The notes beneath the pieces are model-generated. The model saw nothing but the letters and a program-made list of their open reading frames with translations, was not told the DNA's origin and made no database searches. From Macrostomum lignano (taxonomy: Eukaryota), in contig NIVC01002784.1 in NCBI GenBank assembly GCA_002269645.1, forward strand, positions 1 to 44,527: DNA of 44,527 nucleotides, written 5' to 3'. Shown one piece after another: positions 340 to 44,527 of the stretch. Positions within the stretch are counted from its first letter, which is position 1. Each line of letters begins with the position of its first letter. The position numbers were made by a program, and so were the translations under genes.

Positions 340-1965
340 CTGAGCACATCAGCGGGCAGATTATTAACGAAGCAGCCGTCAACCAGCAGGTCGCCGTCAT
401 CGCTCCAGATGGGCGGCAGTATGATGGGGTAGGACATGCTAGCCCTGACGGCTTTCCACAGGCGGCGCGCGTCATAACTCGCATCCGGCAGCTCTGCAAA
501 TCTGTGGCCACAAAATAGCAGGGCAGCCAGAGATCCTCGATGTTCAAGTCGCGATCGAACAGCTTCAGCACCAGCCGGTTCATAAGGCCGCCGCGGAAAA
601 ACGACACCAGCGCAGCGTCATGTCCAGCAGTTGCATCAGCAGGGAGCCGGCCTCGCTGAATGTCTTCTTGGAGCTGTACATGAGCGACTCCAGGCTGGTG
701 TCCATCGCCCACAGGCTGGCCATCAGCGAGCCGATGCTGGTACCGCTCAAGGCATCGATGGGCACCCGTCGATCGCACAGCAGCTTGATGACGGCCGGGT
801 GCGCTGCGCCCCTGGCCCCCCGCCGCCAAGCGCCAACCCGATCGAGGCGCCGGTTAGTCGGCGCGCCAATCGGCGCATATCCGGCGCCACGCGCAACGAG
901 ACCCGTCGAGTCCGGTGCAAGCGCAGGCTGTCGGGCAACCGCAGGTGCAGATGCTGCCGGACCCACGGCCGGCGGCCAGAAACGGCGCCGTAGAGCCGGG
1001 CGGCACCCGGGCTCGCCGCTTCGGATGCAGCAGCAGCAGCTCGATCTGCGCCCTGCTGTACCTGGTGCAGAAGTGCTCGGTGAGGCAGGGCGCTGGCGGC
1101 CCGTCGTGATCTGACAACACCAGGATGATGTCCGCCTGCCTGATGCACAGCAGAGTCCACGGCGTCAGCTCGTAGTCTGCGGCGAATATAACAAAATTAT
1201 TCTCCTCCTCCCCGGCCGTTAGCCAGCTGTGCAATGCGTCATCCCTGGTGCCCAGGTCCCACACGGACTTGTGGAATTTGCGGCAGACCAGCTCCGAGGA
1301 CAGGTGGCGCACCGGTGGCGGCAGAAGGCCAGCCAAGCAGCCGGCAAAAGAGGCGGCCGGCAGGTAGCCCTGAGCCGGGATCACTGCCACAGTCTTCACA
1401 GGAGACGACTGCGGCCGGCTGCAGCTGCTGGATGCCTGGCTGGAGTAAGAATCCAGCAAGGCGTTGGCCAGAGTGGACACCAGCAGGTGGGAGAAGCCCT
1501 GGAATCGCTGGGACAGGAAGGAGACCAGGTGTCTGCTTAATCGGATCAGCTCGGAGTCGCGCACAGACTCGGCCGGTAGCGGCACTGAGACCGGTTCAGC
1601 GCCGCTACTAAGTTAATAATCCTCCCCCGGCCGTAGTACTCGGACTGTCCGGACAGTAGCAGTCGGCCGGACAGCAGGAAATGGCAGTGCGGATCGTCCA
1701 CGCCAGTCCGGCTGGCCAGGCTGGCGCCGCATTTCAACGATACGAAGCGCAGCGCGTAGTCCAGAGTGCGCACCAGCGGGCTGATGGAGCCAAGGCAGCT
1801 GTCTGACACCCGGGCAAGGCAGGCCGCCAGCAGCCGCGGCTCCGAGGCCAGGCTGGCCGGGTCCAGACGGGCCAGGACGGCCGCGGATCGGCAGTAGATG
1901 TCCGAGGCCAGCGGCAGCTGACCGCAGTAGCTGACCATGCCGAAGAATTCGCCTGGGCCGGCCAC
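340..1965 (-). CDS. PNPLA6: PNPLA6/7 (neuropathy target esterase / swiss cheese)-like exon: cNMP-binding domains plus patatin domain; interrupted by five -1 frameshifts (about 1574, 972, 818, 612, 466); gene continues beyond the window start
   Basis: Successive frames give VAGPGEFFG, EYYGRG..., VRDSEL, LTPWTLLCIRQADIIL, HLHLR, DMRRLARRLTGASIGLALGGGG-ARG, GTSIG, IEDLWLP, VRASMS, DGCFVNNLPADV, collinear with NTE. Acceptor CAG at 1968-1966, donor GT at 339-338. Confidence 0.9.
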
Positions 1966-2004
1966 CTGGATGATTGTTAGTCAGTTAGTTAATTAAATTA
2001 TGCT

Positions 2005-2515
2005 ATCATCCAGGTAGTAATCTCTAATCAGAGATCCCATCATCCAGGTATTTTAAACTCTAATCAGAGATTACATCTACCAGGTATTGATCCTTAATCA
2101 AAGATCCCATAATCCAGGTATTAATCCCTAACCAGAGATCCCATAATTCAGGTATTGATCCTTAATCAGAAATCCCATAATCCAGGTATTAATCCATAAT
2201 CAGAGATCCCATAATCCAGGTATTAATCCATAATCAGAGATCCCATAATCCAGGTATTAATCCCTAACCAGAGATCCCATAATCCAGGTATTAATCCCTA
2301 ACCAGAGATCCCATAATCCAGGTATTAATCCCTAACCAGAGATCCCATCATCCAGGTATTAATCCCTAACCAGAGATCCCATCATCCAGGTATTAATCCC
2401 TAACCAGAGATCCCATCATCCAGGTATTAATCCTTAATCAGAGATCCCATAATCCAGGTATTAATCCATAATCAGAGATCCCATCATTTAGGTATTGATC
2501 CTTAATCAGAAATCC
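2005..2515. repeat. Intronic minisatellite, 34-bp unit ATCCCATAATCCAGGTATTAATCCCTAACCAGAG, about 14 copies
   Basis: Direct reading; lies in the PNPLA6-like intron 1966-2560. Confidence 0.95.
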
Positions 2516-2560
2516 CGACTGTGAATTCGTGAAGCGACCCCCCCCCCAAGAAGTGCTCAC

Positions 2561-3991
2561 CGATATGGGCTTGGCTCCCACCCGCTGCCACAGCCGGCCC
2601 CGCAGCACAAAGTACAGGCAGGTCAGGCGATCGCCCGCCTTGGCCACAGCATCGCCCGGCTTGCACTCGGTCACGGACACGGCGGCTTTGAATCGATCCT
2701 CTGGCAGCTCCAGGATGCGAGCCAGCTGTGGCAGCCGGGCCTCCACCGCGTCCGATCGTTGGGAGCCCCACAGACCGCAGGCGGTGGTCGTGGCGACTCC
2801 CGTCTGCTGCTGCTCCCCGCTAGCATTGGTCTCGTCCGGCACCAAGACCGGCAGCAGGCCCTGAACAAAGACTTTGCTGAACTGACGCCAGCAATAAGTA
2901 GACACGGGATTAACGGGCGGACTAAATGATGAAGAACTCAAGTTCAAGGCTTGGCACAGAGCTCGGAAAGACAGAAAGCGGATGCTAGTAGGCTGCAGGC
3001 CGGGATAAGCGCGCAGGTAGACTCGGGCATCCGGGTGCTGCGAGTCCCGGACACTTGGCCGAGACTGGCACAGATGGCCCAGCAGCATCAGAGGGCTGAA
3101 TATGCACTCCCCGGGCGGCACCACCTCAACTATGGTGTGCCTGCCGAATAGGCGGATCTCAATAGCGCCGGAGTCCACAAGCACAATGCCATTGGCTGGC
3201 TCCGCCTCCACCAGGGTGCCGGCTGGCCAGCGGCTGCCAACCAGAGCCAGCCGGTCAATCTCGGCCGCCTGGAGCGACCTGAGCGGCCAAAAAGTCTCGG
3301 CCAGTTTGTCCAGTCCGCGCCGCTGCAGAGCGGATCGAGTTTTCAACGTAGACGAAGAAGCCGACAGAGCATCGTCCTCGCTGAAGTCGCTGTCCGTGTC
3401 GGCAACAGCGGAACCGACCAAGGAACCGACGGAATTCAATCCGTCGCCGCCGCGCCCGGAGGCCAGCAATAGCAGGTCGCCTTGAGTCTTCTGCCTGAGC
3501 AGCCGCTTGCCAATGGAAGACACCCGGCGCATGTTGGTGAGTCCGAGGCCGGCGAGTTGCAGGGCCTGCTGCCGCTGCTGCAGAGCCGTCTGCTCCAGCT
3601 CTAGCTCCTGAGCCTTCTGCAGCTGAAGCCAACGCCGACGACTGCTGTAGGCGGCGGGCGTCCGCGACAGCCGGCCGAGCAGCCATCTGGCGATGCGGCG
3701 CAGATAAAAACGCAGCTGATCTCTACGTCGAAATTTTGTCACTTGGAAGCCTAAAGCGCCGGTCCGATAGGCGTAATTGCCTAGCAACAGTAGCAGGCAT
3801 GCCAGGCAGAAGGGCAACCAGGCCTCGAGTCCCGAGTACTGCAATGCATGTTTGAACGGCACTCTTGAGGGGGAATGAAATCTTCTAGCTGCATAACATA
3901 AGCAAGGACTGAAAATGTTAAGGAGGCCAGGCCAGGTTTTACCGAAAAATACTTTACGGAGATGGGGAATTTTCAGTTTTTTTCTGGACAA
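2561..3991 (-). CDS. PNPLA6: PNPLA6/7-like 5' exon (N-terminal TM helix, FRRRDQLRFYLRRI motif, first cNMP-binding region); true start codon uncertain
   Basis: Open 477 codons to phase-0 donor TCG|GTGAGC at 2560. FRRRDQLRFYLRRI matches NTE FRKRDKVLFYGRKI after a hydrophobic helix. The supplied start at 3991 is TTG; the nearest ATGs (3894, 3849) are one base out of frame. Confidence 0.8.
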
Positions 3992-6281: not shown

Positions 6282-6626
6282 ACTTTCGATACATATCGGC
6301 TGACTGAGAAATCGTTACTTTCGATACATATCGGCTGACTGAGAAATAGTCACTTTCGATACATATCGGCTGACTTACATTGTAGAAATAGTTACTTTTG
6401 AATACACATCGCTGACTGAGAAATAGTCACTTTCAATACATATCGGCTGATTGAGAAAGAGTTACTTTTGATACATATTGGCTGACTGAGAAATAGTTAC
6501 TTTCGATACATATCGGCTGACTGTGAAATAGTTACTTTCGATACATATCGGCTGACTGAGAAATAGTTACATGTACTTTCAATACGCATCAGTTAACCAA
6601 AAAATACTTTAGATACATAACGGCTG
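6282..6626. repeat. Intronic minisatellite, 35-bp unit ACTTTCGATACATATCGGCTGACTGAGAAATAGTT, about 9 copies
   Basis: Direct reading; LCMT1 intron 2. Confidence 0.93.
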
Positions 6627-6636
6627 TTCTTCTCAC

Positions 6637-7056
6637 CTGTTCATAATGCAGCAAAGCGGATTTAGTAAACTGATTAGCTAATTGAGCCAACAGTTTCTCG
6701 CTAGACTCGACAGGCAGGTAAACCAGAACGCATTCGGCTAAGAAAATGGTAGGCAAGTCTGCATCAAGTCCGCAGCTACTCCGCAGAGTAGACACCACAG
6801 CTGCTGGATCGCGCAGATCAGCGGGCACAATGTGATACGGATCAGCGTGCAGCTCATGCCGATTGTGCACAATGTCAACCTCATCGCCACCGATAGCTTC
6901 CAATAATTGCCGATTAGAGGTCACCTGTAGAACTTTGCGGCTAGTGTTGTCTTGCAGGTCGGCGTCAACCCATTTGCATGGCAACCAGTCGGCCTGGGGC
7001 CAGCTAGTGCACAAGCACATGTAGGTTGTGTCAGACCCGGCACCCAGGTTCACTAC
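6637..7056 (-). CDS. LCMT1: LCMT1 exon 2 (SAM-binding VVNLGAGSDT; TIFLAECVLVYL)
   Basis: 140 codons, phase 0 to phase 0; CAG acceptor 7059-7057; YEQ|GTGAGA donor at 6636. Confidence 0.93.
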
Positions 7057-7145
7057 CTGTTGTGTGTGACGTAATGGTAGAATTTGAATGGAGTTAATAC
7101 GACAAGGACCGGTCAATAGAAACGGAAAGTTGGATTTTAACTCTA

Positions 7146-17435: not shown

Positions 17436-19601
17436 TCAAATAGATTTATATTTCTTTTTTCTCCCTTTCTCTAGCTTTTAAAGTCAGTTTGCCAATTGTG
17501 CATGAAGTAGTTATGATATAATCAGTTTCTTAGTTGGTCAATATCAGTCTCAATTAAAAAACAAATTGGTTGAACACAATCAAAATCAAATTGCATGCTA
17601 TACTTCGACACTATGCTTTCAATATTGACTATTTAAGTTAGAGTCACTATATTACAATTCAATTGTGATGCAATCTTTATCAAAATAAGATTTAAACCAT
17701 GATACATGTACAAACAATAAAGAGTGAGAGGGAAAAAGGCAGAGAAAAAGAGAGTGGAAAGAGAAAGAGAAAATGGAAAAGACAGAGAGAAAATATAAAG
17801 AAAAGAGAAGGAAAGCAAATACTAGTTTTTTCATTGTGCATAAAAAATCAAAAGACTGAGTGATTGGTACTAAAAATGCTTTAGGAATGGAATGGAATAG
17901 CTAAGTTTTACTATATCTACAAGCCATTAGGTTGCTAATTAAAACCTAAAATTAGAAAAAGCACATAAAATTACAAATATTATCTATTAAGATAGACAAA
18001 TCTTAGAAATTTAGTATATTGTGATAAGCACTCAAACATTAGAAAATCAAAAGTGCTAGGAAAAGGATAATGCATTGTACTCGTATGCCATAGAAATTCA
18101 TTTTCTAAGGGAAAGCATATGCTCTTGATATTGCGAACTCTTACTACCCATATGCATAGGGGTTCAGTTTTAGTTTTTCTTCTTGCATGGGATAATTTAT
18201 TAGTAATTAATAAAATGACTAAGGTTTAAGACCATTTCATTGGCTAAGTTGACAAATCAAACAAAGAAAACTAAAACTAAGTTGAAAAAATGGCAAAATG
18301 CCAGTTGATAGAATGACTAAGGCCCATATTACATTATTACTTAACCTGTAACTAAAAGATAAAAAATAAGCCTCTAAAAAGATATAAAACTCAGATTTAT
18401 AATTTTAAACCTATTTCCTAAAAAAACACACAATAGAAATACAGACTCAAATAAAATCTAGACCCTAGCCCTTAGTAGACCAAGATAGGTCTACTCAAAC
18501 ACATTTTGAATAGGTTTTTATTATTTAATTATTAATTAATAATTTAATAATTTAATTTAAATAATTTAATTAAATAATTTAATTATTAAATATATAAGTT
18601 CTATTATTAATATTATAGAATTAATCAAATTAAATCATTAGATATGGCTATTCTTTTAATTTTTTATATTTTATTGCTAAGGTAATAGGCCTATGCTCAA
18701 CTGGGTTTATTATAGGGCTTATACTATATTTACACTATCTAGAGCTCTAAACAAATAGCCAAATAAGGAATATAAGACAATTTGATAACAGACAATTCTG
18801 TAATAGACAATTTGGTAATAAGTTGAATGCTATTTGTAATTTTTTAATATATTTATATTTAATATACAAGTATAATATACTTTAAATGATGTGATTTAAT
18901 TATCAATTATTTAATTAATCTAGGCCTACCCTGATAGAGATTAGAATAATATTGCATAAGCCTACCTAGAAATTAAGTCATCCTAGAATTAGAAAGCAAA
19001 AATTTTGCTTAAGAGTGCCAAAATGAATACCTGTTATATCAAAATGATTGCTTGTAGTACTAAAATGAATGTCTGCACCTGCGGCACTAAATTGCTAAAA
19101 TGATTTTAGGGTGTAAGACCAAGATGGCCACACACCAAGATGGCCACAGCTGAGGTGGGGGTCACGGAAAATGACAGCTGGTTTACTATTGGATAGCTTC
19201 GGGTGGGGAGATATGGGGTTGCAATGGGGGGGGTTTAGACAGGCAGTCAAAATTTTATTAGCATATTGCAGGGCTAAAGACAAAAATGGTTATGAGTCTT
19301 AATTTCCTACTTATAGTAGGGCCCTAAGAGGTAAAAATGTATTTCGCATTAAACAAATCTCTTCTTCATATAAAATCTGGTGTAGCTTTTTTCCATTTCT
19401 CTTATTTACTTGTTTAAAGGGATAAAAACTGGGTAAATTTCATGCCCTGTTCAAAATTCATTAGACAGCAGTCTAAGCACTTAGATACAAAATGGCTAGA
19501 TTACTAGAGACTAATTTACTTGTTTAAAGGGATAAAAACTGGGTAAATTTCATGCCCTGTTCAAAATTCATTAGACAGCAGTCTAAGCACTTAGATACAA
19601 A

Positions 19602-20345
19602 ATGGCTGCTGCATATCCATGTGTGGTCTGTCTGCAGCCAGTTTGCGATGGACAAGACGCAACTGAGTGTTCTCAATGCTTGAATTGGCAGCACCGTGCA
19701 TGTGATAGTCGCGTCACAATCGATCAGTATTCTGCAATGAGAAATGTCGGTGAGTTTTTCTGGCTTTGCAATCAATGCAATAGACGGGCTCCTGCAGGTA
19801 ACTTAGCAGTGTCTCAAGCTGCAGGTGCTGCAGTGGTACAATGTACAAGCCCCGAATTCTGGACCAGCGGCTGTTCCTCTGCCTGCTGAAAATCCAGAAC
19901 CAGTGCATTTGAGTCTGCACAAGCAGAAAATTTTCTTTACCAGTATCTAGATTTCAATGACCCTGATCCAGCTCTGGAAGAATCCATTCAAATTCCTCCA
20001 GCAGAGCTTGCACCGCCCTGCAGCCCACCTCCCCGGCCCCTTGAGATTCTTACAGGTGCAGGATGCAGTCACGGAAAAGACCTTCTAGTGCAGTATACCC
20101 AACGAGACCTTGGCCATCTGATGGATGAAAAAATGCGGCGAAATGGCAACACGTACTATCGCTGCACTAAGCGTTTATCACTGCATGCACTGTCATGGCT
20201 CTGCAGTCCGCCGTGCTGATGGAACCATAGAAGCCCTTGCTCCGCACACGTGCGATCCAGTAGATTGGCCAGCTCAGAAGAGAAAGGCAGCAAAGGAGGT
20301 AAAGGAGGGAGCAAAGCGCATGTTGTCATCTATCCATGCCACCCG
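19602..20345 (+). pseudogene. Frameshifted transposon ORF: PHD finger (C4HC3) followed by a FLYWCH-like zinc-binding domain; no DDE catalytic domain recognised
   Basis: CVVC-x-CSQC-x-HRAC-x-WLCNQC at 19602-19781; LEILTGAGCSHGKDLLV...NGNTYYRCTKR.../CHGSAVRR...HTCDP at about 20040-20260 across at least two frame changes. Confidence 0.7.
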
Positions 20346-21489
20346 TACCTTATTGCCATATTAGATCATAACGAGTTAAAAAGCCAAAAAATCCGCACTT
20401 ACTTATTTGCTGCACTCAATATAGCCCTGGAGCATATTTAAGAATCACTGTGCACATTTCTTGCCAGATATTACACTTTGTTTTACGCTCAAATTTGGGA
20501 TGGGGGGTTCATTGCGTCGCACTTACAGAGCAAGCAGCCTTTACTTGGGCTAGTCACTGCATGTATGTGTGACTCAGTGCACTTCTGCCTCCGTAATTCA
20601 TCATCATCCCATCATCCCCATCATTATGCATGATATTATATGAGCTACGTATACGAGCTATTAAAATGCAGATATGAGATACCTTTCGCACCCACGTTCG
20701 CAGAACAGGCCTGATGAAAGATTTCATAGAAAAACAATTTATTCATTGCTACAAGCTGTTGTCAATCCGTTGGTATCTAGAAATAATATGAAATATCGTA
20801 AATGGGTGGCAACTGATGCAGTTTTTTATTTTTGATTTCCACTTCTATTCAGTTTACATACGAGCCGTATTCTGTTGTTTAAGTTGAATACAAAAGGTAG
20901 GCGGGGTTGCTGTCAATTCAAGCTTGAATGAGCAGAGTTAATTTATGGTCAAACAGTCCTCACACTGCTCCCCTAGTGGTGGTGATGCCTCATGGATCGT
21001 TACACTCAAGCCAACCCTAGAGCAACATTTTTTTCAATCTTGGCCTATACTGATACGATACGATTGGAAGTCATAAATAGTCTAAATAACTGACTGGCTT
21101 GCGTGGAGATAAAAATCTATCTATATAAAACAGCTCACCTCAAATCAGCCATATCGTTATTTTTCGTTGCAATCTTTTTTCAGTTTTAACATTTTTAGCC
21201 AACTGCTATGGTTGGTAACCATGATAACAATTAGGCTCGTAAATAAATAACTCAATATAGTGTCTTTGCATGCAGCACTTAGCATGAAGCCTCAGATTTA
21301 TTTATGTAAATATCATTTGTACTCTTTATGCACTGCGGCAAATTTGCACAGATATGAGATGCATGTATTTTTCAGTAAGTACTGATACCCAAGAAACGCA
21401 AAGCTTCAATCAAAGTCTGACAATTCTGAAATCTCGTCAAAATAAGCCAAACCTCTAAATACATGTACAGATACAAGTCTGATGCAAAC

Positions 21490-25323: not shown

Positions 25324-26520
25324 TCAGTAGGTCATATCATGGACGTGATGGGGTTCCTGGCTATAGGCAGTGCATTTTGCCGAGCAGTCGGGCGGTGAGA
25401 CCACTGGACTTCGTCGTCCTCGCATAGCCGTGACGCATCGCCACAAACAGCAGCCGTTACGCGCTCCGCTGGAAGAGCCGCATGCACTACTAAAGAACTG
25501 AACTGCACAGGTGCGAAACCGCTGACTAGCCAAATAGCTGAGACCGTTGCAAGCAAAGTTCAGGTACATTATTGAGTTTAGGAAGCCAAATAATACCCTG
25601 TGACTGTTAGGCTCCCCGCCAATACTGACCATGACCAACTGGTAGACACCCACAGGCAGGTAGGTGATTAAGAAGCTGAAGTTCATCAGCAGAAGAGTGC
25701 GAGACACGCGCTGAGTAGTGCGTGTCCGTCCTGTGGGCCGTCGACAGTACAGCACGCCAGAGATGCACACGGTGCCGAATAGCAGAAAGGCAAATATGCA
25801 CAGATTAGACAAAACAGTCTGGTAATAATAGAATGCTTTGGTGATGGGACTGTCAAAGCTCGTTAGGTTGCAGGGCGCATTCGAGTCCGGTTGATAGTCC
25901 ACCAGCACGATGCGAAATACCGGAAAAGTTAGTGCCACGCAGGTGAGCACAACTAGTACAGCAATTGAGACTCGCACAGATGGCCGACGAATAGGAAATA
26001 GAGTGATGAGCAGTCGTTGCAAGGTGAGGCCGGCTAGGTAGAACGGACATCCGCAGAGAAAGTAGTAAGTGATGGCCATGTACGCTTGACAGGCCAGGAG
26101 GCTGGAGTTCTTCAACGAACCTCGTTGGTAAGGCCACCAGTCTGCATTGTAGCTGGCCAACTCCTCCAGGTAATGGGTTGTAGCCTTCAACAGAAGAGCG
26201 AGGAGGTCGTTGAAACTGATCCAGAGCATGAAGGCGCTGGCTGAGGGAGGAAATACCTTCTGTTTGAGCATGACCACGATGCAGACTGTATTGAGGGCGG
26301 AACCCAGAATGATCAGGATGGGGAAGGCGATGAGATGCGAGTAGAAGTGCAGCTGCACAGCCAGGTTGTTGTCCAAGTCGTACTGGCTGCTCATTCTGGC
26401 TTCTGAGAACATGGACGATTTCAAGACGTTCCTGGCATTGGCGATAGATGAAAACGGGTCTTTTGTGGCCGCATGGAACGCGAAATCGCAGCGTCGTTGC
26501 ATTTTATTTAGTTTACCCAT
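25324..26520 (-). CDS. Intronless rhodopsin-family (class A) GPCR, peptide-receptor-like orphan, 398 aa
   Basis: Seven hydrophobic segments; TM1 GSALN, TM2 NDLL, Cys at the top of TM3 and in ECL2, QRL at the DRY position, TYLP in TM6, NFACNGLSY in TM7; ATG start. Confidence 0.88.
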   Translation of the reverse strand: MGKLNKMQRRCDFAFHAATKDPFSSIANARNVLKSSMFSEARMSSQYDLDNNLAVQLHFYSHLIAFPILIILGSALNTVCIVVMLKQKVFPPSASAFMLWISFNDLLALLLKATTHYLEELASYNADWWPYQRGSLKNSSLLACQAYMAITYYFLCGCPFYLAGLTLQRLLITLFPIRRPSVRVSIAVLVVLTCVALTFPVFRIVLVDYQPDSNAPCNLTSFDSPITKAFYYYQTVLSNLCIFAFLLFGTVCISGVLYCRRPTGRTRTTQRVSRTLLLMNFSFLITYLPVGVYQLVMVSIGGEPNSHRVLFGFLNSIMYLNFACNGLSYLASQRFRTCAVQFFSSACGSSSGARNGCCLWRCVTAMRGRRSPVVSPPDCSAKCTAYSQEPHHVHDMTY

Positions 26521-30382: not shown

Positions 30383-30580
30383 TCACAGAGGCGGCCTGTG
30401 CATGAAGTTGGACAGAATCTCCAGAGGCAGCGGGAATATGATGGTGGAGTTCTTCTCGGCCGAGATCGTGTTGAGCGTCTGCAGGTAGCGCAGCTGCAGC
30501 GCGAACGGCGACTCGTTGATGACGTCGGCGGCCTCCTTCAGGGCCCGGGAGGCCTTCTGCTCGCCCTCAGCTGCGATCAC
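30383..30580 (-). CDS. STOM: Stomatin/MEC-2-like (band 7/SPFH), last exon
   Basis: VIAAEGEQKASRALKEAADVINESPFALQLRYLQTLNTISAEKNSTIIFPLP; CAG acceptor 30583-30581; TGA at 30385-30383. Confidence 0.95.
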   Translation of the reverse strand: MIAAEGEQKASRALKEAADVINESPFALQLRYLQTLNTISAEKNSTIIFPLPLEILSNFMHRPPL

Positions 30581-30769: not shown

Positions 30770-31295
30770 AGCCCAGCCCCCTGTCCAGATCCAAACTCCC
30801 AGCCCCAGCCCCTGCCCCAGCCCTAGTCCCAGCCTCAGCCCCAGTCCCAGCCCCAGCCTCAGCCCCATCCCCTGCCCCAGCCCCAGTCCCAGCCTCAGCC
30901 CCAGTCCCAGCCCCAGCCTCAGCCCCAGCCCCAGCCCCAGCCTCAGCCTCAGCCCCAGCCCCAGCCTCAGCCCCAGCCCCAGCCCCAGCCCCAGCCCCAG
31001 CCCCAGCCCCAGCCCCAGACCCAGCTCCAGACCCAGCCCCAGCTCTCACCTTGGCGCGAGCCTCTCTCGCAGCCCCAGCCTCAGCCCCAGCCCCAGCCCC
31101 AGCCTCAGCCTAGCCCCAGCCCAGCCCCAGCCCCAGCCCCAGCCCCAGCCCCAGCCCAGCTCCAGCCCCAGCCTCAGCCTCAGCCCCAGCCCCAGCCCCA
31201 GCCCCAGCCCCAGCTCCAGCCTCAGCCCCAGCCCCAGCCCCAGCCCCAGCCCCAGCCCCAGCCCCAGCCCCAGCCCCAGCCCCAGCCCCAGACCC
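30770..31295. repeat. (GGGGCT/GAGGCT)n hexamer array on the stomatin sense strand, containing a duplicated exon end
   Basis: Direct reading: plus strand (CCAGCC)n; 31041-31074 repeats 31296-31329. Confidence 0.95.
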
Positions 31296-31304
31296 AGCTC
31301 TCAC

Positions 31305-31383
31305 CTTGGCGCGAGCCTCTCTCGCAGCCTCGGCCTCGGCAGCCATGGCCCGTTGCAGTTGCACTGGCAGTCGGACATCTTTG
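31305..31383 (-). CDS. STOM: Stomatin-like exon ([26 protein letters not shown])
   Basis: CCAG acceptor 31386-31384, phase 2 in; AAG|GTGAGA donor. Confidence 0.95.
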
Positions 31384-32207
31384 CTGGAATGCGGAGTGGC
31401 GGAGGCGGGGCGGTGCGGACAGACGGGCGAAGGCGAGCGGTCGGCTAGGATAGGAAAAAAAGAGCGAGCGGGAAACCGGGCCGCCGGCTACTGCGGCTGG
31501 AAGGAGTTTGTCGCAGACGCCGGTGCAGCCTTGGCCTGCCACTCTCTACACTTTCCCCTCTCCCTCCTCTCCACTTATCCCTCCTCCTCTGGGCCCCGGG
31601 GAGGAAGCTGGGCGACTGACTGATGGAGACCGTGAGCTCTAGTAAATAGAGAAGCGAGAAAGGAAAGTGCAAAAAAACTGAGTGGATGACTGGATGGAGA
31701 AGCTTAAAATGTGTTTGATGAAAAGAATAGAAGCTTTGAATATAGGTGATCAGGATACAGATTCTCTGGCTCAATGCAGCAACAACAAACAGCTTGGTAA
31801 GAAAGAAAAAGCCAGCAATGGTGCTTCGGACTTCCTGGATAAGCAGCGTCAGTTACAGGCCGCCAGTCAGTCCTGTGGCATGCTGGGCGCAAGCATCAGC
31901 AATAGCAGCTACATACAGTTGGAGAGGAAGGTGTTTAAAATAGCATGAAACTGTCGATTGCTATGGGATATAAGAGCGCTAAATTTTCCGGATTTTTTGG
32001 TTCAATTTGTTTTACTGAAACTGTATAAAATGTGCAATTTTTTAACTGATCAGTAACTAAATTACTGCTTAATTTTGAAGCAAATTATAAAAACAAGAGG
32101 AAAGTTGCACACTAAATGAGGTTAACATCCGATGGGAAAGGGCTTACAATGAGTGCGATTTCTAAATTTGAAAATGAAATCGAATTTGCGGTAACGGCTA
32201 TTGGACT

Positions 32208-33176
32208 GATCAACTGTAGGTCACTCCGACACTAGCTATTAGTCATAGTGACATACTGATCAGCTCTATAGTTCACTCCCACACTAGCTATTAGTCATAG
32301 TGACATACTGATCAGCTCTATAGTTCACTCCCACACTAGCTATTAATCATAGTGACATACTGATCAGCTCTATAGTTCACTCTGGCACTAGCTATTAGTC
32401 ATAGTGACATACTGATCCGCTCTATAGTTCACTCCGACACTAGCTATTAGTCATAGTGACATACTGATCCGCTCTATAGTTCACTCCGACACTAGCTATT
32501 AGTCATAGTGACATACTGATCAGCTCTAGTTCACTCTGGCACTAGCTATTAGTCATAGTGACATACTGATCAGCTCTAGTTCACTCTGGCACTAGCTATT
32601 AGTCATAGTGACTTACTGATCAGCTCTAGTTCACTCTGGCACTAGCTATTAGTCATAGTGACTTACTGATCAGCTCTAGTTCACTCTGGCACTAGCTATT
32701 AGTCACAGTGGCATACTGATCAGCTCTAGTTCACTCCGACACCAGCTATTAATCATAGTGACATACTGATCAGCTCTAGTTCACTCCGACACTAGCTATT
32801 AATCAAAGTGACTTACTGATCAGGTCTAGTTCACTCTGGGACTAGATATTGGAGTGACCTATACTGATCAGCTCTAGTTCACTCTGACAATAGATATTGG
32901 AGTCACCTATACTGATCAGCTCTAGTTCACTCTGACACTAGATATTGGAGTGACCTATACTGATCAGCTCTAGTTCACTCTGACACTAGATATTGGAGTG
33001 ACCTATACTGATCAGCTCTAGTTCACTCTGGCACTAGATATTGGAGTGACCTATACTGATCAGCTCTAGTTCACTCTGACACTAGATATTAGAGTGACCT
33101 ATACTGATCAGCTTTAGTTCGTTCTGACACTAGCTATTGGAGTGACCTATACTGATCAGCTCTAGTTCACTCTGAA
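32208..33176. repeat. Intronic minisatellite with 52-, 50- and 48-bp unit variants
   Basis: Core ACTGATCAGCTCT(AT)AGTTCACTC in every unit. Confidence 0.95.
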
Positions 33177-33475: not shown

Positions 33476-33531
33476 ACCTCGACCCTCTCCACCTTGACAC
33501 CCCAGGGGTCTGTGGCGTCGTCGAGGGACTC
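33476..33531 (-). CDS. STOM: Stomatin-like alternative exon D2 (ESLDDATDPWGVKVERVEV), 56 nt
   Basis: CTGAC branch-like site plus CGCAG acceptor; GT|GTAAGT donor; same phases as exon D1. Confidence 0.85.
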
Positions 33532-33633
33532 CTGCGAGTTGCGTCAGCCGTCGGAAGAAAAAAATAGGAAAAGTGGGAGGGGCGGGAGGGGCGTCGAGTT
33601 AAAATTAATATAATCAAAGTGTCTGAGACTTAC

Positions 33634-33689
33634 ACCTCAACTCGCTCCACCTTGACACCCCAGGGGTCTGTGGCGTCATCCAGCATGGC
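33634..33689 (-). CDS. STOM: Stomatin-like alternative exon D1 (AMLDDATDPWGVKVERVEV), 56 nt
   Basis: TTCTAG acceptor; GT|GTAAGT donor; phase 0 in, phase 2 out. Confidence 0.88.
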
Positions 33690-33819: not shown

Positions 33820-35390
33820 GATGGTCAGGGAGGGTGAAGGCGATCGAGAGATGGTCAGGGAGGGTGAAAGCGATCGAGAGATGGTCAGGGAGGGTGAAGG
33901 CGATCGAGAGATGGTCAGGGAGGGTGAAGGCGATCGAGAGATGGTCAGGGAGGGTGAAGGCGATCGAGAGATGGTCAGGGAGGGTGAAGGCGATCGAGAG
34001 ATGGTCAGGGAGGGTCAAGGCGATCGAGGGAGAGTCAGGGAGGGTCAAGGCAATCGAGAGATGGTCAGGGAGGGTCAAGGCAATCGAGAGATGGTCAGGG
34101 AGGGTCAAGGCAATCGAGGGAGAGTCAGTGAGGGTCAAGGCAATCGAGAGATGGTCAGGGAGGGTGAAAGCGATCGAGAGATGGTCAGGGAGGGTGAAGG
34201 CGATCGAGAGATGGTCAGGGAGGGTGAAGGCGATCGAGAGATGGTCAGGGAGGGTCAAGGCGATCGAGGGAGAGTCAGGGAGGGTCAAGGCAATCGAGAG
34301 ATGGTCAGGGAGGGTCAAGGCAATCGAGAGATGGTCAGGGAGGGTCAAGGCAATCGAGGGAGAGTCAGTGAGGGTCAAGGCAATCGAGAGATGGTCAGGG
34401 AGGGTCAAGGCAATCGAGAGATGGTCAGGGAGGGTCAAGGCAATCGAGGGAGAGTCAGGGAGGGTCAAGGCAATCGAGAGATGGTCAGGGAGGGTCAAGG
34501 CAATCGAGGGCGACTCAGGGAGGGTCAAGGCAATCGAGGGCGACTCAGGGAGGGTCAAGGCAATCGAGGGAGAGTCAGGGAGGATCAAGGCAATCGAAAG
34601 AGTGTCAGAGAGGGTCAAGGCAATCCAAAGAGGGTCAGGGAGGGTCAAGGCAATCGAAAGAGGGTCAGGGAGGGTCATGGCAACCAAGTGAGTCAGGAAG
34701 GGTCAAGGCAATCAAGTGAGTCAGGAAGGGTCAAGGCAATCAAGTGAGTCAGGAAGGGTCAAGGCAATCAAGTGAGTCAGGGAGAGTCAAGGCTATCAAG
34801 TGAGTCAGGGAGGGTCAAGGCTATCAAGTGAGTCAGGAAGGGTCAAGGCAATCAAGTGAGTCAGGGAGGGTCAAGGCAATCAAGTGAGTCAGGAAGGGTC
34901 AAGGCAATCAAGTGAGTCAGGAAGGGTCAAGGCAATCAAGTGAGTCAGGAAGGGTCATGGCAACCAAGTGAGTCAGGGAGGGTCAAGGCAATCAAGTGAG
35001 TCAGGGAGGGTCAAGGCAATCAAGTGAGTCAGGAAGGGTCAAGGCAATCAAGTGAGTCAGGGAGAGTCAAGGCTATCAAGTGAGTCAGGGAGGGTCAAGG
35101 CAATCAAGTGAGTCAGAGAGGGTCAAGGCAATCAAGTGAGTCAGGAAGGGTCAAGGCAATCAAGTGAGTCAGGGAGAGTCAAGGCTATCAAGTGAGTCAG
35201 GGAGGGTCAAGGCAATCAAGTGAGTCAGGAAGGGTCAAGGCAATCAAGTGAGTCAGAGAGGGTCAAGGCAATCAAGTGAGTCAGGAAGGGTCAAGGCAAT
35301 CAAGTTAGTCAGGAAGGGTCAAGGCTATCAAGTGAGTCAGGAAGGGTCAAGGCAATCAAGTGAGTCGGGAAGGGTCAAGGCTATCAGGTG
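33820..35390. repeat. Composite intronic minisatellite: 30-bp unit GATGGTCAGGGAGGGT(G/C)AAGGC(G/A)ATCGAGA (33820-34680) grading into 28-bp unit GTGAGTCAGGAAGGGTCAAGGCAATCAA (34681-35390)
   Basis: Direct reading; explains ORFs 33740..34747 and neighbours. Confidence 0.96.
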
Positions 35391-36694
35391 AATCCCCTAG
35401 TTTACGAGCTAGCATCTAGATGAATATGGATGGAAAATATCACTTCGGACACAAATATGACAAATAAAAACATACTTTATTGCTTCCTTTCTAGATAATG
35501 CAGAAAAATTCACTTAAGCGAGTGCTGCTACACTGAGCATGTCTCAAAAGCATCAAGCAAGCAAGAAAATTGGCCTGTTGCGGTAAAATCAAGGCAAAGA
35601 ATAAATTTTGGCCTCCCCAGCAAAGGCAGCAAAAAAGGCAGGACGTCTTTGATGGCAAATTTCCTGGTTAACACCCACTTTCAGTCTGAAAACGGATGCT
35701 GGCGGCCCAGTTCAGGAAATTGAACACGGAGTGTGGCGCCTCCGGCTTTGAGCCGCATGCAACCAATTTGTTCTCAGACGCGATGGATTGGAGCTTTGAC
35801 TGGGCTTTAAATTGGACTGGCTGGCTTGCGTGTGACTGACAAGCTGACAAAGGAGATGGACTGGACACTGAAACGCTGCAGCAGGACTACTGTTTGAGCA
35901 CTGAGAAGTGAGGTGAAAAAAAATTAAATTACTCGGTCGGAGAGGCGGCGGACGGAAGGTCCGGGATAAACTTTCCCCGACACTTTTTCATGATCAGAAA
36001 AGTTGCTGCTGATGGCTGGACGGCTGGCGGGTAGCGCAGTTTGACCGTCACTAAAAAGGCAATCTTCCATGCGCCCTGCAGCTGCGGCTGAGGGTGGTGG
36101 CCAGCAGATGACCGGGGAGGGCAATGTTTGCTCAGCATCAGTCACGCAAAGCTGACAAGCCTTCCTGGCACCAGCTGACGCCGCGCGCCGCCACCTCTGC
36201 GCCGCCCTCCCAGCTGCCCTGCTCTTCCTCCTCATCGCCGCTTCCTCGTTGCCTCTCACCCTGCATGCCCTGCGCCCTTCTCTCCGCCTGTCTGCTTTTT
36301 GTGCATTTCGCTTTTAGTTTGTAGAGTTGCCAGGCGGATCCATGCATAGTAGCGATGCGGACTGAGGCACAGACAGGCACTTCGCGCCAAGAAAAATGCT
36401 ACACACTACAGTAGTTCAGTGGGCGCTTTCTCAGCCAGAGGCAGGGATGCCGTGAGAGCTGAGTAGGAAGCATGAGAATGCGTGTAGATACAGTAGACTG
36501 CAATGCCTTCGCTGTTTCACTTTTTGCCTCGAGCAACAGACCGATTTGCTGCCAGACCCGACAGTTTTAGCGATGCAATGTAGCAAAAAACGCAAAAGCA
36601 ACTCTTTGAGACTGAGAGCAGCACCTCTTTGAGCTCAATTCAACATGGCATTATTAGGCATGAGAAATGGCAAGCACAATTCCTGAGCACTCGC

Positions 36695-36898
36695 CTGCAT
36701 CATGTTGCTGATGCTCTCGCGTTCCGACAGAATCTCGGACAGGTTCTTCGTGCCCAGCACGTTGCGCAGGGTGGTGGCGGCCAGCAGGCGGGTGGACCTG
36801 TCCGCGTCTTCAACGTTAGTTACGGCGATCACTGGGTTGTAGATTCTGTAGTACACGACCGCGTCAACGGCCACCGTGACAGAGTCCTTCGTGAGCAC
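36695..36898 (-). CDS. STOM: Stomatin-like exon C (VLTKDSVTVAVDAVVYYRI...ISNMMQ), ending at a GC donor
   Basis: 68 codons; CAG acceptor 36901-36899; CAG|GCGAGT at 36694. Confidence 0.93.
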
Positions 36899-38439: not shown

Positions 38440-38595
38440 CTCCTGCGGCGGCACATCGAAGGTCACTGTGCGCAGGTCCACCTTGCGAATGATGTCCATG
38501 CAGGGCACAATGAAGAACAGGCCGGGGCCTTTGGCGCCGCCTTCGAGTATTCGACCAAGGCGGAAGATCACGGCCCGCTCGTATTCGGCCACCAC
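38440..38595 (-). CDS. STOM: Stomatin-like exon B ([15 protein letters not shown]...[13 protein letters not shown])
   Basis: 52 codons; CAG acceptor 38598-38596; GAG|GTGAGC donor. Confidence 0.95.
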
Positions 38596-38699
38596 CTGGT
38601 CAGAGTGGGAAGGTTTGGGTTGGTAGCATCGATTTCCCTACTGGTAGCTCTGCACCTGATGATGCGCGCTAAAACGGGGTTGCTTCAGTGTAGCGCATC

Positions 38700-39365
38700 T
38701 TTGGGTTGCCAGCTCCTCCCCCAGTCCATCTGTGGGTTGCTAACACCTCCCCCAGTCCATCTGTGGGTTGCTAACACCTCCCCCAGTCCATCTGCGGGTT
38801 GCCAGCTCCTCCCCCAGTCCATCTGTGGGTTGCCAGCTCCTCCCCAGTCCATCTGTGGGTTGCCAGCTCCTCCCCAGTCCATCTGCGGGTTGCCAGCTCC
38901 TCCCCCAGTCCATCTGTGGGTTGCCAGCTCCTCCCCCAGTCCATCTGCAGGTTGCCAGCTCCTCCCCAGTCCATCTGTGGGTTGCTAACACCTCTCCCCA
39001 GTCCATCTGTGGGTTGCTAACACCTCTCCCCAGTCCATCTGTGGGTTGCTAACACCTCCCTCAGTCCATCTGCGGGTTGCCAGCACCTTTTCCAATTCAT
39101 TTGTGGGTTGCCAGCACCTCTCCCAGTCCATCTGTGGGTTGCTAACACCTCCCCAGTCCATCTGTGGGTTGCTAACACCTCTCTCAGTCCATCTGCGGGT
39201 TGCCAGCACCTTTTCCAATTCGTTTGTGGGTTGCCAGCACCTCCCCAGTCCATCTGCGGGTTGCCAGCACATTTTCCAATTCGTTTGTGGGTTGCCAGCA
39301 CCTCCTCAGTCCATCTGTGTGTTGCCAGCACCTCCCCAGTCCATCTGTGGGCTGCCAGCACCTGC
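38700..39365. repeat. Intronic minisatellite, about 30/31-bp unit CAGTCCATCTGTGGGTTGC(TAACA/CAGCT)CCTCCCC
   Basis: Direct reading. Confidence 0.94.
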
Positions 39366-39583
39366 CCCAACCATAACAAGCTTTCAGTGCTATCGGCTTT
39401 TAGGAATCGTTTCGCTGATTATCTGATATTGAAAATTTAATTGAAACCAAACCCAGACAGTTAATTTTCATATAGCCCACGAATTCCTTTAACACTCACT
39501 CAGTATCTCGGTTCAATAAAATCATAATATGTTTCTAAGCTATTTATAGAGCTAAATTGGAAGTCTTATTAGTTTGTGCTTAC

Positions 39584-39693
39584 CTTGATGCAGAGGCACA
39601 ATGACAGCGGTAGAGTCACCACAATGAGCGCGTACGACAGGATGATGAGGACGCCACCGCAGAATCCCATGCCCTGAGAGTCCCGCTGCTGGC
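39584..39693 (-). CDS. STOM: Stomatin-like exon A (membrane hairpin: GMGFCGGVLIILSYALIVVTLPLSLCLCIK); upstream first exon not located
   Basis: Not in the ORF track; read by hand. CCGCAG acceptor 39696-39694 (phase 1), AAG|GTAAGC donor; matches stomatin CG-x-L-x-x-LS...TxPxS-x-x-xCIK. Confidence 0.9.
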
Positions 39694-40639
39694 CTGCGGT
39701 GGGCAATGGAGAGATGGGGTATTATAGGCACTGTTCCCGTGTTAATAAGTCTCGAGCATTTTGTTCCGTTAGGATTGAACTATAAGCATTTGAAAGCAGT
39801 CGTATCTTCGTGCCGTCTTAGTTTGTCTGTCTGTCTGTCTGTCCCAGTATACTCGTATTTATATGTGTCCATCTAATCTTTTTCCAATCGTACCATTGTG
39901 AATAATTTTGTAGCTTTATTAAAGTGCTCTCTAGCTATTTTTAGCGCAGTGATATAATTTTAAATAATATTCGCAACGTCAAGATTTCATTAAGGCCAAC
40001 CCCCAAAGGGGGGAGTGTGCTAGTCCACTATACTAAAAACGGTTTGTCTCTATCTACAGATTTTAACATGTAGTTATCTGGAGAAAATAGATAAAATACA
40101 AGTTAAATAGCACATAAAAGTGTGTCTATCTTCAGCTGTAATAAAGCTTCCCAAAGAGCTCACTGGGATCACTCAGAGGTCCTGTGGCTGGCGGTTTCTC
40201 TCTACTTCGCATGGCGGCGGCGTGCATTATTGTCTCGCAGCTTTATTTGTTCTATCGTTTAGTATTTGTCACTTTAGAAGGCTCGCTGTTCTAGAGAGCG
40301 GGCCTCACATATTTATACTAGCTTCTGCACTTCTCGCTCTGACTTTGGATTGAACTCTGGGCAAATCGATGAGGTTGCCATATGATTGGACAGCTGGTCT
40401 GGCCCTATCCCTTATCCAATTTCGCTTGCCCACGGCTTGGGTCCAAGAAGCTAAGGCCAGTGCTAAGGCTAAGGCGATCTGGCAGATTGGCAGCCCAACA
40501 CCTGCTGCGAGCGACAAGTGAAAACAGGTGCAGAAACTCCCATCTACATTCTATTTAATAAACTTCCCTGTAGAAACTCAATACAACTATAAATTCGCTC
40601 CCTATTATTGATAACTAAGTAGTATGGAAGGGTGAAAAG

Positions 40640-41482
40640 AGAAAGGGGGAAGAGACAAGAGAAGGGGGCAGAAGAGACGAGAGAAGGGGCGGAAGAGATG
40701 AGGAAAGGCGGAAGAGACGTGAGGGGGCGGATGAGACGGGAGAAGGGGGCGCAGGAGACGGGAGAAGGGGCGGAGGAGACGGGAGAAGGGGGCAGAGGAG
40801 ACGGGAGAAGGGACGGAAGAGATGGGAGAATAAATCAGAAGAGACGGGAGAAGGGGGCGGAAGAGACGGGAGAAGGGGCGGAAGAGACGGGAGAAGGGGC
40901 GGATGAGACGGGAGAAGGGGGCAAAGGAGACGAGAGAAGGGGGCGGAGGAGACGGGAGAAGGGGCGGAGGAGACGGAAGAAGGGGGGGCGGAAGAGACGT
41001 GAGAAGAGGCGGAAGAGACGGAAGAAGGGGCGGAGGAGACGGAAGAAGGGGCGGAGGAGACGGGAGAAGAGGCGGAAGAGGCGGAAGAAGGGGGCGGAGG
41101 AGACGTGAGAAGAGGCGGAAGAGACGGAAGAAGGGGCGGAGGAGACGGAAGAAGGGGCGGAGGAGCGGAGAAGGGGCGGAAGAGGCGGAAGAAGGGGCGG
41201 AGGAGACGGGAGAAGGGGTGGAAGAGACGGAAGAAGGGGGTGGAAGAGACGGAAGAAGGGGGCGGAGGAGACGGAAGAAGGGGGCGGAGGAGACGGGAGA
41301 AGGGGCGGAAGAGGCGGAAGAAGGGGCGGAGGAGACGGGAGAAGGGGTGGAGAACGGAAGAAGGGGCGGAAGAGACGGAGAAGGGGCGGAAGAGGCGGAA
41401 GAAGGGGGCGGAGGAGACGGAGAAGGGTGGAAGAGACGGAAGAAGGGGCGGAAGAGACGGGAGAAGGGGCGGAAGAGACGGG
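40640..41482. repeat. Purine-rich about 21-bp minisatellite GGAGAAGGGGCGGAAGAGACG
   Basis: Direct reading. Confidence 0.93.
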
Positions 41483-41809: not shown

Positions 41810-42600
41810 CTGATCCTAAACTGTTTATTGACTGATCATAAACTTTTTATTTTTTTATCCTAAAATGTTTATTGATTGACCATAAACTGTTTACTGCTTG
41901 ATCCTAATATGTTTGCTGATTGACCATAAACTGTTTACTGCTTAATCCTAAACTGTTTGCTGATTGACCATAAACTGTTTACTGCTTGATCTTAAACTGT
42001 TTATTGACTAATCATAAACTGTTTATTGATTGATACTAAACTGTTTATTGACTGATCATAAACTTTTTATTTTTTGATCCTAAAATGTTTATTGATTGAC
42101 CATAAACTGTTTATTGATTGACCATAAACTGTTTACTGCTTGATCTTAAACTGTTTATTGACTGTTCATAAACTGTTTACTGATTGATCTTAAACTGTTT
42201 ATTGACTGATCATAAACTGTTTACTGATTGATCATAAACTGTTTACTGCTTGATCTTAAACTGTTTATTGACTGATCATAAACTGTTTATTGATTGATCA
42301 TAAACTGTTTATTGATTAATCCGAAGCTGTTTATTGATTCATCCGAAGCTGTTTATTGATTAATTATAAATCATCATAATCTTGATTGATCATAAACTGT
42401 TTATTGACTGGTCATAAACTGTTAATTGATTGATCCTAAACTGTTTATTGATTGATTAGAAAAAAAAACTGTTTATTGACTGGTTATAAACTGTTAATTG
42501 ATTGATCCTAAACTGTTTATTGATTGATTAGAAAAAAAACTGTTTATTGATTGATCATAAACTGTTTATTGCTTGATCATAAACTTTTAATTGGCTGATC
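41810..42600. repeat. AT-rich 22-bp minisatellite TAAACTGTTTATTGA(T/C)TGATCA
   Basis: Direct reading. Confidence 0.92.
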
Positions 42601-43404
42601 ATAGAACCTTATTAGCTGTTCCAATTGACTAATAGACTTAAATAGAATCAGCTTCGGTCCGAGCTACACCACTGAATTTATTCACTTAATTCACTACTAA
42701 AAGCAGCAACCAAAGCAAATTTCAGCTAGAAGCCGAGTTTTGAACCTACTGGGAGAGATGCCCGCATGCGCCACTGATAAAAGCGTTGAAGATTCGGGAG
42801 TTGAAGCAGATTCTGTTCCAACTTCAAACAGAATTTTGATGCAAAGAAAGTAAACAGGGAATAGCACGCCCCGGCCAAGCGGGAACCCTCCCTTGAGCAC
42901 TGCTCAGCGTGGTCGAACAAAAATGAAGTTGTTGATATTCCATTATAAAATGCGAGAGCGGTGACAGAGCGTGTTTTTGCGTCAAGGGGCTTCGCATAGT
43001 TTGCAGCAACAGGGGGTCGGGCGAAGTCGGCGACTTCAGCGACACTTCCCGCTCTCTCCCATAGCCTTTTATCTCGCCGCGACTGTAGCGGAGGCAGTCG
43101 CTGGGGGGATCAAGAAAACCCATTGCTCCGCGCGATATCCAGAAAATGAGGGATAGAGAGAGAGAGAGAGAGAGAGAGAACTCCAATGGCCGATTAAATA
43201 ATTCACGGCTCAATCAACACTAAAAGAATCGGAGGGACCACTCTCTGTGAGTGTGAATTGAACTGCTGGCTGTTACAATCTCGATAGCTAGATCTAGCAG
43301 TCAATGCTGAACTGTTTTGGCATCTTCCTGTCACAGACTGGTTTGAACTAACTATATTTCAGCAAACCTGACTCAGGGGAGAGAGCTGAAGTAGGGTCAG
43401 GCGT

Positions 43405-44527
43405 AGACAAGTGGCTAATAGCGATAGACACCTTGAGAAGACCAAGAGGCTAATAGCGATAGACACATTGAGAAGACAAGTGGCTAATAGCGATAGACAC
43501 CTTGAGAAGACAAGTGGCTAAGAGTGGTAGACACATGGAGTAGACAAATGGCTAATAGCGATAAACACTTTTGAGTAGACAAATGACTAATAGCGATAGA
43601 CACTTTGAGGAAATAAGTGACTAATAGCGATAGACACCTGGAGTAGACAAATGACTAATAGCGATAGACACCTGGAGTAGACAAATGACTAATAGCGATA
43701 GACACCTTGAGAAGACAAGTGGCTAAGAGTGGTAGACACATGGAGTAGACAAATGCTAATAGCGATAGACACCTTGAGAAGACAAGTGGCTAAGAGTGGT
43801 AGACACATGGAGTAGACAAATGCTAATAGCGATAGACACCTTGAGAAGACAAGTGGCTAAGAGTGGTAGACACATGGAGTAGACAAATGCTAATAGCGAT
43901 AGACACCTTGAGAAGACAAGTGGCTAAGAGTGGTAGACACATGGAGTAGACAAATGCTAATAGCGATAGACACCTTGAGGAGACAATGGCTAAGAGTGGT
44001 AGACACATGGAGTAGACAAATGGCTAATAGCGATAAACACTTTGAGTAGACAAATGACTAATAGCGATAGACACCTTGAGGAGACAAGTGGCTAAGAGTG
44101 ATAGCCACATGGAGTAGAAACTTTGGAGTAGACATTATCGCTAATAGCGATAAACACTTTTGAGTAGACAAATGAGTAATAGCGATAGACACCTGGAGTA
44201 GACAAATGCTAATAGCGATAGACACCTTGAGTAGACAAATGCTAATAGCGATAGACACCTGGAGTAGACAAATGACTAATAGCGATAGACACCTGGAGTA
44301 GACAAATGACTAATAGCGATAGACACCTTGAGTAGACAAATGCTAATAGCGATAGACACCTGGAGTAGACAAATGACTAATAGCGATAGACACCTTGAGT
44401 AGACAAATGCTAATAGCGATAGACACCTGGAGTAGACAAATGACTAATAGCGATAGACACCTGGAGTAGACAAATGCTAATAGCGATAGACACCTTGAGT
44501 AGACAAATGACTAATAGCGATAGACAA
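43405..44527. repeat. About 33/34-bp minisatellite GAGTAGACAAATG(A)CTAATAGCGATAGACACCT(G/T) with alternating variants; runs off the window end
   Basis: Direct reading. Confidence 0.93.

Follow-up and report, generated by a model that had tools for sequence, protein, structure and literature searches.

A tandem duplicate of a 56-nt exon in the SPFH domain of a stomatin-like gene of the flatworm Macrostomum lignano and its probable use as a mutually exclusive pair

The stomatin-like gene and its two 56-nt exons

The minus strand of Macrostomum lignano contig NIVC01002784.1 (GCA_002269645.1) carries a stomatin/MEC-2-like gene with two adjacent copies of one 56-nt exon, here called exon A and exon B. 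The whole stretch of 44,527 nucleotides that was analysed is referred to as the window. The exons of the gene (Table 1) were mapped by tblastn with human stomatin as the query and by manual inspection; the ATG exon lies beyond the end of the window. The 266-amino-acid product encoded in the window is 100% identical to two M. lignano GenBank proteins, P0002 (BOX15_Mlig015086g3) and P0003 (BOX15_Mlig019436g1). Since the window DNA is 91-99% identical to the contigs of P0002 and P0003, the window represents a third copy or a haplotype of one gene in a redundant genome.

The initial annotation, made from the letters alone, had assigned the gene to the stomatin family and placed the exon pair inside the SPFH domain, and both assignments were confirmed. 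Pfam Band_7 (PF01145) matched residues 37-208 of the 266 amino acids with an E value of 3.3e-39 for the isoform with exon A and 7.5e-40 for the isoform with exon B, and residues 4-259 aligned with the human stomatin cryo-EM chains 9wkz and 9oh9 (E ~2e-121). The product has the architecture of the stomatin subfamily, with an N-terminal hydrophobic hairpin, SPFH1/2 and C-terminal oligomer-building helices.

Table 1. Exons of the stomatin-like gene and the intron between exons A and B, in window coordinates
Feature	Position	Strand	Remarks
Coding exon, hydrophobic membrane hairpin, GMGFCGGVLIILSYALIVVTLPLSLCLCIK	39584..39693	minus	
Coding exon, start of the SPFH domain, ends DVPPQE	38440..38595	minus	
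Upstream constitutive exon, ends LSERESISNMMQ	36695..36898	minus	GC donor after it
Exon A (AM), AMLDDATDPWGVKVERVE(V)	33634..33689	minus	56 nt, phase 0 to 2
Intron between exons A and B, GTAAGT...CAG	33532..33633	minus	102 nt
Exon B (ES), ESLDDATDPWGVKVERVE(V)	33476..33531	minus	56 nt, phase 0 to 2
Downstream constitutive exon	31305..31383	minus	first base completes the Val codon begun by A or B
Last coding exon, VIAAEGEQK...FMHRPPL	30383..30580	minus	stop at 30385-30383

Exon A is preceded by an AG at 33691-33690 and followed by a GTAAGT donor at 33633-33628, and its coding part is AMLDDATDPWGVKVERVE plus GT. Exon B is preceded by an AG at 33533-33532 and followed by a GTAAGT donor at 33475-33470, with ESLDDATDPWGVKVERVE plus GT as its coding part. 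Reading the minus strand base by base thus bears out two complete exons with these signals at the 102-nt spacing first proposed, and the proposed edges of the flanking exons, 36695 and 31383, agree with our exon map. In the intron between the two exons, a pyrimidine-rich tract and a CTGAC branch-point-like motif precede exon B. With exon A or with exon B the frame is open to the stop codon, and both isoforms are full-length; their sole differences are two mid-helix residues, Ala-Met in A and Glu-Ser in B.

The donor after 36695 is CAG/GCGAGT (36694-36689), a GC donor that the initial annotation had missed. CAG/GCGAGT is found at this upstream intron in 3/3 copies of the window gene, and GTGAGT stands there in three paralogue loci. 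Because P0002 and P0003 read MMQ/AM, the GC-AG intron is the one that is used. P0012 (UniRef A0A1I8INZ9), a UniProt/WormBase model of the window gene, reads past the GC donor to a GT 17 nt downstream (window 36678-36694; MMQASAQEF/KDV) and skips both 56-nt exons, which removes half of helix alpha4 and strand beta3. The skipping of both exons in P0012 is probably a prediction artefact.

Minisatellite arrays make up most of the introns of the gene (30798-31298, 32205-33175, 33824-35391, 38696-39369, 40639-41482, 41811-42603 and 43403-44526). One of them, immediately upstream of exon A, has 54 copies of a 30-nt unit, one downstream of exon B has 19 copies of a 50-nt unit, and another consists of 84 copies of CCCAGC. 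These arrays may lie behind the strong GC and AT skews of the composition profile. Neighbouring coding pieces, all on the minus strand, are found at 854-3991, 6589-7116 and 25324-26520 of the window. The neighbours comprise exons of the neuropathy-target-esterase family (NTE_Ploop, E 1.5e-20, with a weak cNMP-binding match), a leucine carboxyl methyltransferase exon (LCM, E 2.7e-15) and an intronless 398-aa ORF with a sub-threshold match to the rhodopsin-type 7TM family.

Paralogues, age of the duplication and gene conversion

Exons A and B are identical at 46 of 56 nucleotides, with unbroken identity over the 33 nt of exon positions 13-45 (window 33645-33677 in A and 33487-33519 in B). Besides the two replaced codons, they differ in CTG/CTC, GAT/GAC, CGA/AGG and GTT/GTC, so that the four synonymous codon differences and two amino-acid changes are exactly those reported at first sight of the sequence. 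Their flanks have chance likeness to each other (9/40 upstream and ~10/34 downstream past the shared GTAAGT). The early description of unrelated flanks around an identical centre therefore withstood base-by-base comparison. Adjacent, equal in length and phase, homologous and furnished with their own splice sites, the two exons have the features of a tandem duplicate.

The pair occurs in other M. lignano contigs. L003 and L004, from the same assembly (GCA_002269645.1), are copies of the window gene in which both exons are 100% identical to those of the window. L001 and L005 represent a paralogue with 94% amino-acid identity, which has an NM exon and an ES exon, each with AG and GTAAGT, at a spacing of 263 nt and 260 nt, respectively. 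L002 (BOX15_Mlig018945g1) is a third paralogue with the NM exon alone; its 3.4-kb intron (17582-21010), examined by local alignment and six-frame pattern scans, showed no remnant of exon B above chance, and L002 has either lost the second exon or never gained it. The three copies of the window gene differ at 2 sites in the 102-nt intron and at none in either exon, but with copies so nearly identical, the contrast between no change in 112 exonic nt and ~2% in the nearby intron has no statistical power as a sign of constraint.

The initial annotation had itself named an assembly artefact as a danger. That exon B is an assembly error, a chance likeness or a young neutral duplicate without a role is, however, hardly credible. 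M. lignano assemblies are highly redundant and repeat-rich (PMC5730564), and minisatellites fill the adjoining introns; nothing else speaks for such an origin. On the other side, five contigs carry the pair, namely the window, L003 and L004 with identical copies, and L001 and L005 with diverged ones, and the paralogue has an intron of 263 nt between its exons and differences at other synonymous sites. The flanks of A and B are unrelated, hence there was no recent block duplication.

The age of the pair can be judged from the three paralogues, whose pairwise dS is 0.83-1.03 with a dN of 0.02-0.03. When the window gene is compared with L001 from the upstream to the downstream exon, only the exons and 6-7 nt of splice signal are alignable, and the 263-nt intron between the exons of L001 cannot be aligned with the 102-nt intron of the window. 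Since both exons are kept in the paralogue while the introns are unalignable and dS is ~0.8, the duplication predates a paralogue split that is near silent saturation. The ES exon of the window differs from the ES exon of L001 by 9 synonymous and 0 non-synonymous changes, and when nine substitutions were placed at random the peptide was preserved in 0 of 200,000 simulations. Between the NM exons of L001 and L002 there are 12 synonymous and 0 non-synonymous differences. The ES residues are kept between the paralogues despite a synonymous change, TCC versus TCA. Changes that are all synonymous in both comparisons (9/9 and 12/12) indicate purifying selection on both copies, including the one that the annotation leaves unused. 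These results agree with the proposal of an old duplication with both copies under purifying selection. Exon B is the derived copy, and its ES is common to the second exon of the paralogue. Taken together, the comparisons argue that the tandem exon duplication is genuine, old and selectively maintained.

The identical 33 nt call for an explanation of their own. Over these 33 nt there are 5 differences between each window exon and its counterpart in L001, and 8 between the NM and ES exons of L001. Because A equals B over 33 nt in the window gene, yet the L001 pair differs at 8 sites, a short exon-to-exon gene conversion is suggested; conversion in the lineage of the window gene, rather than selection alone, probably explains the identity. 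The conversion would have left untouched the 3' end of the exon and the two 5' codons by which the isoforms are told apart. A copy that is not used may, through gene conversion, appear better preserved than it truly is.

Exon usage and the control of exon choice

The GenBank annotation of GCA_002269645.1 was not made ab initio but was built from StringTie/TACO RNA-seq assemblies and a mapped de novo transcriptome; TransDecoder called the ORFs, and TACO was run with an isoform-frac of 0.75 (PMC5730564). We read this setting as keeping dominant isoforms only, and with such a filter one isoform per locus is expected anyway. Among the RNA-seq-derived GenBank models, P0002 and P0003, from both other copies of the window gene, have AM, and P0006 and P0121, from both copies of the L001-type paralogue, have ES. 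P0004 from L002 has NM. P0005, a UniProt/WormBase model of the paralogue protein that is otherwise identical to P0006, has NM as well. Since P0006 and P0121 carry ES, an ES-type exon is spliced into real transcripts within the family. The dominant exon choice differs between the paralogues. Exact look-up in a collection of 15 billion proteins found no ES-for-AM versions of P0002 and P0003 and no match for an NM-substituted P0121. For M. lignano, protein-database searches returned GenBank and UniProt models only and no transcript-derived sequences.

These models can also be explained by a fixed choice in each paralogue, with the window gene always using exon A, the L001-type gene always using exon B, and the unused copy being a relic kept by conversion and slow decay. 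We regard this as rather improbable, though to be taken seriously. Both models of the window-gene copies are AM and both GenBank models of the paralogue are ES, as such a choice predicts; the central 33 nt, identical in the window pair and 8 sites apart in L001, point to conversion; and L002 lost or never had the second exon. However, a 56-nt exon out of use should have become unrecognisable over a divergence of dS ~0.8 that has left the introns unalignable. Exon B is conserved with the paralogue also where conversion by exon A was impossible, namely in the ES codons, CTC GAC, the AG acceptor and the GTAAGT donor, and the 12 changes between the supposedly unused NM exon of L001 and the functional one of L002 are all synonymous. 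In addition, the second annotation of the paralogue (P0005) uses NM, and the TACO filter, as we read it, leaves one isoform per locus whichever exons are used. We consider it likely that the window pair is used as mutually exclusive exons. If so, some cells or stages would express the exon B form of the window gene as well; against this stand the sole use of exon A in both RNA-seq-derived models of its other copies and the negative look-up of their ES-for-AM versions.

Mutually exclusive exons that arose by tandem duplication are widespread in animals. Exons 5N and 5A of vertebrate voltage-gated sodium channels form such a pair, whose usage and regulation have been established by experiment. 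The two systems have in common adjacent, homologous exons of equal length that differ in one to few residues of a conserved structural element, and use of one exon per transcript is proposed for M. lignano as well. The difference is that usage in the window gene is deduced from conservation and from the annotation of the paralogue.

The claim that including both exons or neither breaks the reading frame, so that exactly one must be used, holds in its first part. The product with A and B stops after 220 amino acids and the product without either stops after 186, but the frameshift stops come 1 and 11 nt after the start of the last exon, and degradation of these transcripts by classical EJC-dependent NMD is thus not assured. 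The wall and cap helices hold the stomatin 16-mer together (PMC12344292), and the proteins made with both exons or with neither would lack them.

How one exon is chosen may be considered against the known mechanisms of mutual exclusion. Dscam exon 6 and 14-3-3 zeta rely on docking-site/selector RNA structures, and alpha-tropomyosin exons 2 and 3 on steric hindrance. The outcome in these systems, one exon of the cluster per mRNA, is the same as that proposed here. Unlike alpha-tropomyosin, the M. lignano genes have 102 nt (window), enough for an intron to be spliced, or 263 nt (L001) between the two exons, and an RNA-seq-derived model of L002 has an intron of ~80-85 nt between its exons 2 and 3; steric exclusion is therefore unlikely. 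Incompatible U12-type and U2-type sites do not account for it either, as both exons have GTAAGT and AG and no donor of the ATATCC/RTATCCTT type. As to a docking-site/selector structure like those of Dscam and 14-3-3 zeta, no significant local structure and no conserved intronic complementarity were found at the pair. The local fold of the 301-nt region around the pair is not unusual (z = -1.0), a search of 5.4 kb for inverted repeats gave short pairs at chance level only, and comparison of the paralogues gave no conserved intronic complementarity, the introns having no similarity. In L001 (18114-18209) the 3' end of the first exon, CAAGGUUGAGCGA, can pair with the intronic UCGCUCACCUUGG ~50 nt downstream and enclose the donor (z = -2.5), which it might thereby mask. 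The equivalent hairpin in the window (~33564-33658, minus strand) is weak (z = -0.95), so that hairpins at the exon-A donor are not consistently significant. None of these comparisons revealed a mechanism that would enforce exclusivity. It appears that exon choice may depend on trans-acting splicing regulators and splice-site competition rather than on steric or RNA-structure constraints, and the weak upstream GC donor may contribute to it.

The two-residue switch and its counterparts in other animals

The 56-nt exon corresponds to human stomatin residues 176-194, with the two switch residues at human S176/T177, and encodes the C-terminal half of SPFH helix alpha4 and most of strand beta3. In the AF2 model of P0002, which has a long N-terminal helix (36-66), an alpha/beta core and long helices at 208-269, the exon residues 183-201 span the second half of helix 174-192 and the first part of strand 194-205; the block-mean pLDDT is ~94-96 over residues 171-200. 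According to Brand et al., Leu178 and Thr182 form the lining of a hydrophobic pocket, and ASIC3/ASIC2a modulation is lost with T182W (PMC3433786). Leu178 and Thr182 are both encoded by the exon and are the same in A and B, and the switch residues immediately precede Leu178. Helical periodicity suggests that residue 183 (A/E) shares a face with Asp187 and Asp190, and residue 184 (M/S) with Ala188 and Trp192. Glu would then extend an acidic stripe with two Asp at i+4 and i+7, and Ser would restore the second-position residue of most non-flatworm animals. In the oligomeric stomatin cage the two-residue switch might tune the binding of partners or lipids, or packing near the pocket. The stomatin cryo-EM papers searched make no mention of residues 175-185.

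The two switch positions show the lowest conservation of a segment that is almost invariant elsewhere, with SS, TS, TM, AM, NM, ST, AT, KL, VA and others across animals. Because these positions vary so widely, the functional difference between A and B may be small, and at least one member of the family, L002, can dispense with the ES form, as it lacks a second exon. It could even be that both exons are used, that the protein difference is neutral and that the pair is kept for regulation, for example as an on/off switch through a truncated inactive protein. The tolerance of the two positions for many residues is compatible with this, and including both exons or neither truncates the protein before the oligomer-building wall and cap helices (PMC12344292). 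Yet the conservation of ES between the paralogues through TCC versus TCA, and of the second-position Met of the first exon across flatworms, argue for constraint on the residues, and we hold a neutral protein difference to be very unlikely.

Outside M. lignano, the Spirometra, Clonorchis and Schistosoma japonicum loci have the exon with the same boundaries and AM or TM, and no second copy of the exon was found in these three loci. The xM form is the flatworm-typical version of the exon, its second-position Met being flatworm-specific and conserved across flatworms, and a second-position Ser is the common animal residue. Among 287 collected homologues, ES was seen in Macrostomum only.

The initial annotation had named no earlier mutually exclusive exon at this position, without excluding one. 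No descriptive paper was found, and a literature search on mutually exclusive exons with stomatin, Mec2 or band 7 returned nothing on the equivalent exon, but a mutually exclusive pair at exactly the equivalent exon is already in public gastropod annotation. RefSeq isoform pairs that differ solely in the equivalent 56-nt exon are found for two Babylonia genes and for Patella vulgata. In Babylonia areolata 'mechanosensory protein 2-like', isoform X1 has SSLDEATDPWGVKVERVEV and X2 has TSLDECTDPWGIRVERVEI; in Patella vulgata, X2 differs from X3/X4. The Babylonia pair was confirmed genomically through the X1 locus (L010), where the copies lie at 52308-52363 and 56688-56743, both of 56 nt and bounded by AG...GTGAGT, and the Patella pair is taken from annotation. 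A 'C...IR...I' version of the exon is found in Patella, Babylonia, Nucella and an Aplysia-like transcript fragment. This alternative version brings in one or two cysteines (xC/xS-LDxC-T...IR...I).

The gastropod pair matches the flatworm pair in length (56 nt), in phase (0 to 2), in its equivalence to human residues 176-194, in being a tandem duplicate and in giving isoforms that are otherwise identical. On the other hand, the gastropod copies are ~4.3 kb apart and the flatworm copies 102 nt, and the gastropod copies differ at 5-7 residues that are scattered over the exon (S to C, A to C, V to I, K to R, V to I), whereas the flatworm copies vary only at the first two residues. Since the varying residues differ and the duplicate is absent from the neodermatan loci, independent origins in flatworms and gastropods are the most economical explanation; as far as sequence comparison can tell, the two duplications are most likely independent.

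Isoforms of stomatin-family genes that are cell-type specific and functionally distinct are known from C. elegans mec-2A/B/E (PMC8934639). There the isoforms arise from an alternative 3' splice site and a large cassette exon and vary in a disordered C-terminus, the stomatin domain being common to all, and they probably co-assemble as heteromers (PMC8934639). The M. lignano switch, by contrast, is inside the SPFH domain. The annotation of the equivalent snail exon as alternative suggests a preferred site for functional diversification.

The stomatin family (stomatin, MEC-2, STOML3, podocin) regulates DEG/ENaC/ASIC and other channels. Its members have recently been found to form 16-subunit membrane cages (PMC12344292). 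An alternative SPFH exon beside Leu178/Thr182 would be a natural two-residue experiment on the surface of the pocket, in a flatworm that is capable of transgenesis. We would go further only as an unlikely conjecture: the equivalent SPFH exon, duplicated independently in macrostomids and gastropods, might be a recurrent stomatin 'specificity cassette' that tunes the channel or lipid partner, or that allows mixed-isoform 16-mer cages whose properties vary between cell types. The M. lignano pair itself belongs to a known class and makes a minimal difference to the protein; it is useful for structure-function work on stomatin and for annotation, and not surprising. For annotation, the lesson is that filtering for dominant isoforms hides such pairs and that ab initio models can mis-splice them, as P0012 probably did.

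Doubling of the same segment was also seen in a different form. In P0001, P0007, P0009, P0010 and P0015 (Rotaria, Brugia pahangi, Acipenser, Adineta), LD.AT..WG.KVERVE occurs twice in one protein at least 70 residues apart, and these models look like fused tandem genes or larger duplications, not alternative exons.
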